A stretch of 64,000 nt of DNA from Piromyces finnis finn (GCA_002104945.1 MCFH01000001.1:2108001-2172000), one strand, 5' to 3'. Counted from the first letter of the stretch, positions 46,653 to 51,901 are shown. Notes: a model not told the origin generated them from the letters alone. Translations and numbers: made by a program.

Positions 46653-49600
46653 ATGGCTTTTCACTGGACCTCGAAAACCAGTAGTAGTTCTTCAGCGGTA
46701 AAATATTTACATTGCATATAATAATATAATAATATATAATAAATATATATGTATGCCAAAGTCATTGTTTTTAAAATTAAATTTAGCTCGGTATTTATTG
46801 AGTTCGGTATTTATATCAATAACAAGTTAACTCGAATTTAATTTATTATATATATAAAAAATGTAAATAATAAATAAAATAATAGCAATAATAGCAATAA
46901 TAGTTGATATATGAGTAAAGAATTTTAGTATATACAGTAATATATTATATAAAATGCAATTAATTTTATTATTTAAAACAAAAAATTAGTAGAAATTAAA
47001 AAAAAAAAAAAAAAAAAAAATGAAAAAAAATGAAAAACTAAATGATTAATATAATATATATTTATAATTTATATTGACATTGACATATATATTGTTTTTA
47101 TATAAAATCCCAATGACACAATTAATTAACAAATTATATAAAATCTATATTTTTATATTTACAAATGATATATACTTAAATAAAAAAATAAAAATATTGA
47201 TTATTTATAATAAAAAGGGTGTTGAAGATATGGTTTTACTTTCAAAAGTAACTGAAGAACAGATAGTAGACAATCTTCGTAAAAGGTATATAAATATTTT
47301 AAAAACTACATATTATGTTAATATTAATATTTTGATAATATGAAGATTATAGATTGCTTCGATAGTAATTATAATTGTAATTAATTTCATTTAATATATA
47401 ATATAATAAATATTTAGATATCAAAATGATTTAATTTATACATATATTGGTCCAACTTTAGTAGCTGTTAATCCTTATAAGCAACTTCCATATTTCACTC
47501 AAAAGGAAATTGGTAAAATAATGCTATATTTATGCTATAATTATAATATAAATACAATATTTATTTTTTTTATTTTTTTTATTTTTTTTTAATATTATAT
47601 AAAATCTATAAATAAAATAGATATGTATCGAGGAGCTGTAAGAATATATATCTATAATTGAAAATTCTAATTTTATTATAACATGATTTCATTAAATAAA
47701 TTGGAATATAATAACTTAGGCATCCCATGAAAATGCACCACATATTTATGCAACAGCAGATACAATGTATATAATATTATTCATCAAGAATTTTATAATT
47801 ATCAAAGAAATAAAAATTAAAGATATTACTATTATTTATTATTTATCATTTATCAAAATAATATAGGTTTCAGAATATGATGACAGATGAAGAAAATCAA
47901 TGTGTTATTATTAGGTAATAAAGCAGCAATTTAATGTAATAATTATAAAGACATATTTCTAATTATTATAATATATATACAACAATAAAAATAATTATAT
48001 GTTAATTAACAGTGGTGAAAGTGGTGCAGGTATACATTTTTTTTTTTATTTAAGATAAAGCCATATTTTATATTTATATATCCTTTTAAATTAATGATTT
48101 GTTTTATTTATAATTTGAAATAAATAGGAAAAACTGAATCAGCTAAATTAATTATGTAAAATAGATATACCAATAAAAAAACAAATATTAAATATCATGT
48201 AATTTTTATATTAATAATCATATAATTTTATTTTAAATTAATATCAATGTAAAAATAAATAATTTATATTATATAGGGTAAGTTAGTTTATAATTAATCA
48301 TATTATTATTGATTATAAAAATATTGCTAATGATGGATTTATCTATAAATTGAATTAATAGAACTATATTGCTGCCGTATCAGATAGAGGAGGTTCTGGA
48401 AGTAATATTGTTGAACAAGTAAAAAATATTATTTTAGGTGTAAGCAATCTATAAGTATTATAAATAATCTTTTTGATATGAAAGACTTTTCATTATTAAT
48501 ATTATTAATATTTAAACTAACTAATTATCAATATATAAATGCTAAACAATTAAATTTAATAATAACCAAATTTTGATTAAAGTCTAATCCATTATTAGAA
48601 TCTTTTGGTAATGCTAAAACATTAAGAAATAATAATTCATCTCGTTTTGGTAAATATTTTGAAATTCGTTTCTTAAGAGGTGGTCAACCAGTTGGTGGTA
48701 ATATTTCAAATTTCTTATTAGAAAAGGTAATTTAAAATTTTATTCAAGATTATAGATAGTACTACGTATTTTAATATGATTCTTTAAAGTATAAATAAAA
48801 TATTATAAATACTTAAACAATTTATTTTAATATAATTTATTATTAAATATATAAATTATATTTTTAAATCAATTAATAGTCTCGTGTTGTTTCTCCAGGA
48901 AAAGGTGAAAGAAATTTCCACATTTTTTACCAACTTACTAAAAATGTCACTGAAAAAGATAGAACTGAATTAGGATTAAGTGCTCCAAGTAATTTCAATT
49001 ATTTAAATTGTAGTGGTACTTATGATGCTGATGGTATTGACGATACTAAGGAATATGCTGAAATGAAGAAATCATTAACAATTTGTGGTGTAAGTGAAGA
49101 AGACCAAAATTCTTTATTCCAAATTGTTGCTGGTATTTTACATTTAGGTAATATTGATTTCACCGAAGAAAATAATGAGGCCGTTGTAATTGATCCAAGA
49201 ACTTTAGAATTTCCAGCCTATCTTTTAGGTGTTTCTGCAGACGCTCTTCATGATAAATTAGTTTCAAGATTAATGCAAACAGGTTTTATGAAAAAACGTC
49301 AATCTGATATTCGTATGACATTAAATCGTGAACAAGCTTGTAGTAGTCGTGATGCTTTAGCAAAGGCTCTCTACAGTCGTATGTTTGATTGGTTAGTTCA
49401 AGAAATTAATATTGCAATGAAAAAACTTCAAGGTAGTAACCAAGATCAAATTCTTAACCTTGGTGTATTAGATATTTACGGTTTTGAAATTTTTGAAAAG
49501 AATGGTTTTGAACAATTTTGTATTAATTATGTAAATGAACGTCTTCAACAAATTTTCATTGAATTAACCTTAAAATCAGAACAAGAAGAATACGTTCATG

Positions 49601-51901
49601 AAAATATTCAATGGGTACCAATTGAATTCTTTAACAACAAGGTTGTTGTAGATTTAATTGAATCTAAGAGACCACCAGGTATAATGTGTATTTTAGATGA
49701 TGTTTGTGCTACAACACATGCTGTATCAAAGGGTTCTGATGAAGATTTTGTTAGAAAGATGGATTCTAATTGTGGTGATAGTAAGCATTACCAAGGTATG
49801 CAAACAAAATTCTTAATTCGTCACTATGCTGGTCCAGTTACTTACGATTGTGAAGGTTTCTGTGAAGCTAATAAGGATACTCTTTTCAAAGATTTAATTA
49901 TTTTAATGCAAACCACCACTAAACCATTTATTCGTAATCTTTTCCCAGAAAATATTGATGCTGATGATAAGAAAAGACCAACTACCTTTTCTTTCAAGAT
50001 TAAGTCTCAATGTCACGAATTGGTTGATACTTTAATGAAATGTACACCTTCCTACGTTAGATGTATTAAGCCAAATGAAAATAAGGTTCCAAAGGAATGG
50101 GATAGCAAACGTGTTGAACATCAAACACACTATTTGAACTTGAAGGAAAATATAAAGGTTAGAAGAGCAGGTTTTTGTTACCGTCAAACCTTTGAAAAGA
50201 TGTTAAAACGTTACGCTATTCTTACCCCCGAAACTTATCCATCCTGGAATGGTAATCCAAAAGATGGTGTCAAACATATTTTGGAAGCTGTCGATATGGA
50301 TAAGGATCAATGGCAATTTGGTCTCACCAAGGTCTTCATTAAGACTCCAGAATCTTTGTTTATTTTAGAAGAATTGCGTGACAGAAAATACCATGGTTAT
50401 GCCAAGACCATTCAAACATGTTATAGAAAATGGAAATCAAGAAAATACTTCCTTGATTTAAAGAAGGAAGCCACAGATATTTTCTATAATAAGAAGCAAA
50501 GAAGAAGATTCTCTATTAATCGTGACTTTAATGGGGATTATATTAATTATTTAAGTAATCCAATATTAAAACAACTTGTTGGAAAGAATGAAAAGGTTTA
50601 CTTTGCCTCGGAAATGAACAAATTTGATCGTAAATTTAAGAATGTTTCCATTTTTGATTTTATTATTGGTGAACAAACTGTTTACTTTATCGGAAAAGAA
50701 AAGGCCAAGAAAGGACCAAATAAGGGTAAATTTATTAAAGTTGTAAAACGTGCCGTTCCAATAGATCTAATAACCGGTGTTTCTACTAGTGCTCTTGCAG
50801 ATGATATTATTGTATTCCATCTCCCAGAATATGATTATGTTTGTGAAAATGTATTCAAAACAGAATTGGTTACTATTCTTAACAATCAATATAAAAAGCA
50901 CACCAATAGAACATTATCTATTACAATTAATAATACTATTAATTATACGGTTAAGAAGACCAAATGGTCTGGCGGTGGTGTATACAACCTTCAATTTATT
51001 GAAGATCCATCTATTCCAACCAATATTGAAGGTACCACCGGTATACCAAAAGCTGGTAAGGCAATGACAAAACCAAAGAATAAGGGTGCCGAAATTCGTA
51101 TGCCACCTGGTCTTCCAGCAAGTACTAAACCTGTTCATAAGGAACCACCTGTTAATACATACCATGCACCAGAAAAGAAATATATTCAACCGGCTGCTGC
51201 TTCATCTACTCCAGCAGCAACTTACACACCAGCTGCTGCTCCAGTCAGTGCTACTCCTTCAGCACAAATTTCCAATCCAATTTCTTCTTCTATCCTAGCT
51301 AAAGCTCAAAGTATCAATACCAATTTAAGTAGTTTGGCTAATCCACCTGTTGCTCAACAAGTCAAGGTTACTAAAGCTGGTACTACTCCAAAATCAATTA
51401 CTTCACCAGTGAATCCAAAGATTAGTCAAATCAAGAAACGTCCTCCACCAACACCACCACCAAAGAAGAAGTTACCAACTGTTAAAGCCATTTATGCCTA
51501 TCAAGTAATTAATCTTTTTTTTTTTTTATTATTATTATTATTTATATTTTTATTCTTTCATTGTACTAATTAATTTTATTGCTTCCCCCCCCCTTTTTTT
51601 TTTTTATTCTTCTTTATTAATTCTTCATTTTATTATAGGCTAGTGAAGCTGATGAACTTTCCTTTAATGCTGGTGATATTATTTATGTAATTTCTAAAGA
51701 TGAATCTGGATGGTGGACTGGTGTAAAACAAGGAGAACAAAAGAAGGGTTTAGTAAGTAGTATTATTATAATTAAATGATTATTATAATAAAAAGTTTAA
51801 TTTTTTTTTTTTTTTTTCATACATTAAATTTTTAATATTACTAATTTATTTATTTTTTCTATTTATCCTAGTTCCCATCCAACTATGTACAGGAAAATTA
51901 A
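46653..51901 (+). CDS. Long-tailed class I myosin (motor, IQ, TH1, Pro/Ala-rich TH2, SH3; MYO1E/F-like), multi-exon
   Basis: MAFHW...[23 protein letters not shown]|[18 protein letters not shown]; P-loop IIS|GESGA|GKTE; '[28 protein letters not shown]'; '[44 protein letters not shown]'; IQ '[12 protein letters not shown]'; SH3 '[37 protein letters not shown]'. Includes a 2625-nt exon 48880-51504. Confidence 0.96.

Follow-up and report, generated by a model that had tools for sequence, protein, structure and literature searches.

A probable one-nucleotide exon in the long-tailed class I myosin gene of the gut fungus Piromyces finnis

Piromyces finnis encodes a long-tailed class I myosin on the plus strand of the stretch of DNA analyzed here (64 kilobases (kb), called the window throughout). 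The locus raises a narrow question. Just after the P-loop of the motor, one exon ends two bases into a methionine codon and the next recognizable exon begins on a codon boundary, which leaves the messenger RNA (mRNA) one base short. The first-pass annotation proposed that this base is a lone G at position 48277, set between two introns of its own. Based on sequence comparison, G48277 is very likely a constitutive one-nucleotide exon of this gene, placed between two canonical introns. This reading is supported by an AGGGTAA motif found in seven lineages, by a sole canonical splice path, and by transcripts of two related genera.

Splice paths and conservation at the junction

The splice signals at the junction are located as first described. 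The exon at 48128-48155 reads GA AAA ACT GAA TCA GCT AAA TTA ATT AT and is followed by GTAAAA. Further downstream, positions 48270-48283 read TATATAG-G-GTAAGT, made up of an acceptor AG at 48275-76, the lone G, and a GTAAGT donor at 48278-83. A second acceptor, TAATAG, ends at 48361, and the following exon starts with AAC at 48362. Two complete GT-AG introns are observed one base apart in the genomic DNA, both in P. finnis and in the six other lineages described below.

Every GT/GC...AG combination between 48128 and 48439 was enumerated. The sole path that keeps the segment AKLIM-NYIAAVS with canonical sites removes GT48156-AG48276, retains G48277, and removes GT48278-AG48361. The acceptor at 48387 had been considered the only other in-frame canonical option, but GT48156-AG48402 and GC48142-AG48361 are in frame as well. 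Each of these three single-intron paths (to AG48387, to AG48402, or from GC48142) removes conserved residues, and neither the mRNA nor the conserved protein is recovered along any canonical path that omits the one-nucleotide exon. The two introns, 121 and 84 nucleotides (nt) long, fall inside the range of 82-153 nt seen for the gene's other internal introns, the first intron apart; a single 205-nt intron would not.

Genomic loci of orthologues were compared in seven lineages: P. finnis, Piromyces sp. E2, a Piromyces-like metagenome lineage (17 contigs), a metagenome contig from a fourth genus, Anaeromyces robustus, and two Neocallimastix paralogues. The first-pass annotation had named as a check whether AG-G-GT is kept in other Neocallimastigomycota, and the element was found in all seven available genomic lineages. 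Each carries exactly one AGGGT between ...ATT AT and AAY TAT. The motif always leaves an intron-sized part on either side, one of 106-206 nt and one of 78-142 nt. In a MAFFT alignment (A1), AGGGTAA is the only invariant internal run besides the 5' GTAA and the 3' AG, and the rest is unalignable. An internal AG-N-GT is kept among the orthologues while the intron sequence around it drifts.

The motif in one genome alone is only mildly improbable, with about a 1% chance of coincidence. On both strands of the window, AGGGTAA occurs 3 times against 5.2 expected, which gives ~0.8% for a given 206-nt stretch, and composition shuffles give 0.75%. When the motif must leave both parts at least 40 nt long, composition-preserving shuffles produce it in 0.1-1.9% of trials per lineage. 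Its recurrence at the identical place in seven lineages goes far beyond what chance would give.

Other features of these loci differ among genera. Anaeromyces has no intron between VIIS and GESGAG and carries one 65-nt exon (L002:3210-3274), compared to exons of 48 and 17 nt in Piromyces and Neocallimastix (L003:3323-3543). Intron content therefore varies among the genera, yet the pair of introns around the one-nucleotide exon is kept in all of them. The two Neocallimastix myosin I paralogues are located on different contigs (L003 and L034), and the one-nucleotide exon is present in both. A long (ATT)n(ACT)n microsatellite is found in the upstream intron of Neocallimastix (L003:4055-4165; also L004 and L005); compared to the other two assemblies, the N. 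californiae copy (L005) has 2 extra nt. A further N. californiae model (P0149) covers an N-terminal fragment of 307 amino acids and shares its contig with the partial model P0143, which suggests that the two are one gene split by annotation.

Transcripts, gene models, and competing explanations

Transcripts of two related genera can be matched exactly to their genomes. The JGI metatranscriptome contigs L006-L008 match the Neocallimastix genome contig L003 and encode exactly the N. californiae/lanati protein. The Logan transcript contig L033 matches the Anaeromyces genome contig L002 and encodes the A. robustus protein. All of them read ATTAT-G-AATTAT, with a single G between the flanking exons. 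The mature mRNA of two genera therefore has exactly one G between these exons. Exact-match spliced alignment recovers 12 introns in Neocallimastix and 8 in Anaeromyces, all GT-AG, and places the one-nucleotide exon at L003:4188 and L002:3567. When the minimum exon size is raised to 2 nt, exact spliced alignment finds no canonical path in either genus. The transcript-derived orthologues from Logan and JGI (contigs of ~3.5 kb) all share one peptide at this junction, with the AKLIM-NYIAAVS segment intact.

For P. finnis, four sequencing runs from three studies, guessed to be RNA, contain 55-58% of the sequence words of the locus. This is about the exonic share and is what would be expected for spliced mRNA. 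A word search with the N-terminal 330 amino acids of a Piromyces-like transcript protein found no P. finnis transcript fragments.

In the proposed splicing of this stretch, two complete U2-type GT-AG introns, 48156-48276 and 48278-48361, would abut G48277. Removal of both would join ATT AT, G, and AAC TAT, and would thereby complete the methionine codon in the conserved helix that follows the P-loop. U1 pairing at the second donor (-3 to +6, or 48275-48283) would overlap the AG of the first intron. With the first acceptor and the second donor in one U1 footprint, the introns would probably be recognized or removed sequentially. Either order would lead to the identical mRNA and would leave usable signals, ATG|GTAAGT if the first intron leaves first and TATATAG|G AAC if the second does. 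The half-spliced form that has lost the first intron and kept the second would read ATTATG followed by GTAAGTTAG, and the reverse form would read TATATAGG followed by AACTATATT. Intron definition is plausible for introns this short.

Several observations weigh against a one-nucleotide exon. Mature mRNA by itself cannot separate such an exon from one TA-AG or GT-TA intron. No transcript-derived protein of P. finnis was found in the protein collection searched. Among assembled metagenomes and metatranscriptomes, the half-spliced form of exon 8, G, and GTAA had 0 matches, in assemblies that rarely keep intermediates. The form of AG, G, and exon 10 had 13 matches, none of them myosin; the contigs were unrelated, had 33-55% G+C, and for the most part looked bacterial. 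Because assemblies drop rare intermediates, both blank searches are weak negative evidence. Lastly, branch-site (YTRAY) motifs are not conserved across the lineages and do not occur consistently. The TGCTAAT motif pointed out earlier is present in the downstream P. finnis intron at 48325-31, 31 nt before the acceptor, but its CTAAT is not conserved across lineages, and branch sites were dropped as evidence for the exon.

As a separate observation from these collections, L022 is an unrelated ENA metagenome contig that was matched by chance. Its first 33 nt (L022:1-33) begin with sequence resembling a transposase-library adapter (…AGATGTGTATAAGAGACAG), which is probably an untrimmed adapter in a public assembly.

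The alternative that best survives is a single non-canonical 205-nt intron, with ends TA...AG (48157-48361) or GT...TA (48156-48360). The G would come from 48156 or 48361, and AGGGTAA would be kept for another reason. Such an intron would yield a mature mRNA identical to that of the relatives, and splicing intermediates were not found in assembled contigs. Nonetheless, every other intron of myosin I in three species is GT-AG, and chytrids use a plain GT-AG intron at the same junction. At 205 nt, it would exceed all other internal introns of the gene except the first. It would also leave unexplained why AGGGTAA is the sole invariant island in seven otherwise unalignable introns. Because of the invariant internal AGGGTAA, the GT-AG ends of all other examined introns of the gene, and the intron lengths, a single non-canonical intron is improbable. 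A U12-type or other non-canonical intron was rejected as well. There is no 5' /RTATCCTT, no TCCTTAAC-type branch site, and no AT-AC ends; the stretch reads GTAAAATAG...TTAATAG.

A second alternative is that the deposited P. finnis model, ORX61173.1, is right. This model uses the acceptor at 48387, reads AKLII-GGSGS, and loses the conserved segment. The path is canonical and in frame, and it is the public annotation. It deletes, however, a segment that is invariant in all transcript-derived orthologues and in chytrids, and across genera 48362-48386 is kept as coding sequence. The same model also carries a spurious N-terminus; it starts inside intron 1, whereas orthologous transcripts and the sequence support an exon at 46653-46697.

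The public models of the other genomes bear on this alternative. At the exact position of the one-nucleotide exon, four of the six public gene models are wrong, ORX61173.1 among them, each differently. The Piromyces sp. E2 model is wrong at this spot, the A. robustus model has an insertion of IICKII, and one Neocallimastix lanati paralogue model has an insertion of IFNFILIII. The two N. californiae models are correct. Four differing wrong models at one spot are what would be expected of a feature not covered by the rules of gene finders. The mutually inconsistent failures of the three other genomes' models also count against ORX61173.1, and the chance that the deposited model is right is very small.

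The weakest alternative is a 1-bp assembly error or true frameshift (pseudogene) in P. finnis. It gains something from the very AT-rich sequence and from a sole DNA run found that may be the assembly's own source. It can be set aside, since several species, assembled independently, require this additional base (the one-base deficit with an AG-G-GT solution recurs in the assemblies of six other lineages), and with the G included the gene is fully open over 14 exons.

The host gene

The gene belongs to the long-tailed class I myosins (Myo1e/f and fungal Myo3/5 type), with a head, a TH1 domain, and a C-terminal SH3 domain all present. P0001, a protein with 100% identity to the large exon, has precomputed Pfam matches to PF00063, PF06017, and PF00018/PF07653/PF14604. 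The gene is composed of 14 exons, assigned by homology to transcript-confirmed exons (Table 1). With the one-nucleotide exon included, the corrected model runs open through the head, TH1, and SH3 parts, and its introns are all GT-AG. The N-terminus encoded by exon 1 agrees with the transcript-derived orthologues P0003, P0004, P0005, and P0123. Over 48880-51504, the product of exon 12 is 100% identical to ORX61173.1.

The exons are distributed unevenly. Eleven exons of 1-144 nt make up the 5' third of the motor domain, and the remaining 2.6 kb is a single exon. Two exons in this region are 17-nt micro-exons (47621-47637 and 48013-48029). Intron 1 is 520 nt long and follows the 45-nt first exon (46653-46697). 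Non-coding parts of the window are extremely AT-rich, with 8-20% G+C.

Table 1. Exons of the P. finnis class I myosin gene and the two introns flanking the predicted one-nucleotide exon (positions in the window).
Feature	Position	Strand	Description
Exon 1	46653..46697	+	ATG; 45 nt; 41/45 identical to Neocallimastix exon 1, equal length; then GTAAAA
Exon 2	47218..47285	+	68 nt; homologue of transcript-confirmed Neocallimastix exon; AG and GT flanks
Exon 3	47418..47512	+	95 nt
Exon 4	47621..47637	+	17-nt micro-exon; (D)MYRGA
Exon 5	47720..47766	+	47 nt
Exon 6	47867..47914	+	48 nt
Exon 7	48013..48029	+	17-nt micro-exon; P-loop first half GESGAG; T GGT GAA AGT GGT GCA G; 17/17 identical to Neocallimastix
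Exon 8	48128..48155	+	28 nt; (G)KTESAKLI and AT of Met codon; ends in phase 2; 28/28 identical to Neocallimastix
Upstream intron	48156..48276	+	121 nt; GTAAAA...TATATAG; canonical GT-AG; position AT|G common to two chytrids
One-nucleotide exon (G), predicted	48277..48277	+	Third base of Met codon in AKLIM
Downstream intron	48278..48361	+	84 nt; GTAAGT...TAATAG; canonical GT-AG; CTAAT at 48327-31; not in chytrid outgroups
Exon 10	48362..48439	+	78 nt; AAC TAT ATT GCT GCC GTA TCA ... TTA GGT; then GTAAGC
Exon 11	48583..48726	+	144 nt
Exon 12	48880..51504	+	2625 nt; rest of motor, IQ, TH1, Pro/Ala-rich tail; open frame of 875 amino acids
Exon 13	51639..51752	+	SH3 domain, first part; matches P0001 C-terminus
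Exon 14	51872..51901	+	FPSNYVQEN and stop codon

Origin and comparison with known systems

Chytrids provide outgroups for this junction. Rhizoclosmatium globosum (L036) and Polychytrium aggregatum (L038), which belong to different orders, share the intron after GESGAG and the 28-nt exon, and then have one ordinary intron. Their junction reads ATC AT|GTAA...AG|G AAC TAY, the two introns measuring 58 and about 180 nt, and the next exon opens with the G. Internal AGGGT is absent from the AT|G introns of Rhizoclosmatium and Polychytrium. Gonapodya and Gaertneriomyces have no intron at the AT|G position.

The one-nucleotide exon probably arose by gain of a second intron just after the G, judging from these outgroup sequences. 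An old phase-2 intron would have been present at AT|G, and a second intron would have been gained directly downstream of the G on the stem lineage of the Neocallimastigomycota, stranding that base. Since the downstream intron is absent from the chytrid outgroups, it is inferred to be the younger of the two. Its gain would predate the Neocallimastix duplication, because both paralogues have the one-nucleotide exon. In the most complete account, the exon was born in the common ancestor of gut fungi when an intron landed beside an ancient phase-2 intron. It was then held throughout the phylum and through the Neocallimastix duplication in an essential motor gene, with an obligate order of intron removal owing to the shared U1 footprint. 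This account as a whole is tentative, slightly closer to doubtful than to probable.

One-nucleotide exons themselves are already known, and the earlier statement that no fungal case was known is out of date, as cases in Fusarium (PMC12940212) and Coprinopsis cinerea (PMC12230235) have been published. The myosin I exon is the first found in early-diverging fungi, as far as could be found. A full-text literature search returned nothing on micro-exons in Neocallimastigomycota.

The closest likeness is to the CYP621A P450 genes of Fusarium, whose one-nucleotide exon in AGGGT was described as the first from a fungus and the second overall (Nelson & Syed 2026, PMC12940212). In both CYP621A and myosin I, a lone G is located between a canonical acceptor and donor within a conserved motif, is kept among orthologues, and was missed by automatic annotation. 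For CYP621A, reads across the joint support the exon (PMC12940212). The two differ in that CYP621A is an Ascomycota P450 whose G is the middle base of a Gly codon, whereas the myosin I G, in Neocallimastigomycota, is predicted to be the third base of a Met codon. Unlike CYP621A, the myosin I exon is kept across several genera and two paralogues. The proposed origin also differs. The CYP621A exon was proposed to come from a 1-bp deletion rescued by a cryptic AGGGT (PMC12940212), whereas the outgroups of myosin I have the ancestral single intron, which favors intron gain over deletion rescue.

APC11 of Arabidopsis contains a constitutive single-nucleotide exon whose function was shown by reporter constructs (Guo & Liu 2015, PMC4674806). 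Like the myosin I exon, it is located between two GT-AG introns and is misannotated in databases. APC11 is a plant gene examined with reporter constructs, whereas the myosin I exon is known here from sequence. In the basidiomycete C. cinerea, long-read annotation identified 13 exons of 1 nt in 13 genes (PMC12230235). These indicate that fungal spliceosomes handle one-nucleotide exons, and their omission breaks gene models, as in myosin I. The Coprinopsis work is a genome-wide list, and an analysis of conservation or origin was not found there.

Stwintrons are spliceosomal twin introns of Pezizomycotina and have been discussed along with one-nucleotide intron shifts (PMC5587772, PMC5639578). 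A stwintron resembles the myosin I stretch in that a single intervening stretch contains two U2 introns, which are excised one after the other. The external intron of a stwintron has a splice signal that is split by the internal one, and the mRNA keeps nothing, whereas in myosin I the signals of both introns are intact and one base is kept. A stwintron was rejected at this locus, where both introns have a complete 5' GT and 3' AG in the unspliced sequence and the base between them is retained.

Ratchet points of the Drosophila Ubx type are zero-length AG|GT sites that leave nothing in the mRNA. They resemble the myosin I element in that a 3' splice site directly precedes a 5' splice site within a long stretch that is removed stepwise. 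In myosin I, a single coding base stands between the AG and the GT. The first-pass annotation had offered an offset recursive (ratchet) site as an alternative wording. That wording would amount to an identical two-step removal, but the element is not a classic zero-length ratchet point, as one base is kept in the mRNA. A zero-length recursive site was likewise rejected; G48277 separates AG48275-76 from GT48278-79 and is needed in the mRNA.

One consequence is that the gene model of a core motor of the cytoskeleton is corrected. In the helix just after the P-loop, errors are present in the public proteins of P. finnis, Piromyces sp. E2, A. robustus, and one N. lanati paralogue, and phylogenetic or structural work that uses the uncorrected myosin I proteins inherits the error. 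Gene finders for the intron-rich, extremely AT-rich genomes of gut fungi should permit AG-N-GT exons. The myosin I exon adds a deeply conserved, multi-genus case to the very short list of documented one-nucleotide exons, and the chytrid outgroups offer a readable before-and-after of its origin by intron gain beside an existing intron. If the full account of that origin is true, the myosin I exon would be a natural, deeply conserved model of how an intron-definition spliceosome handles an exon without any length to define.
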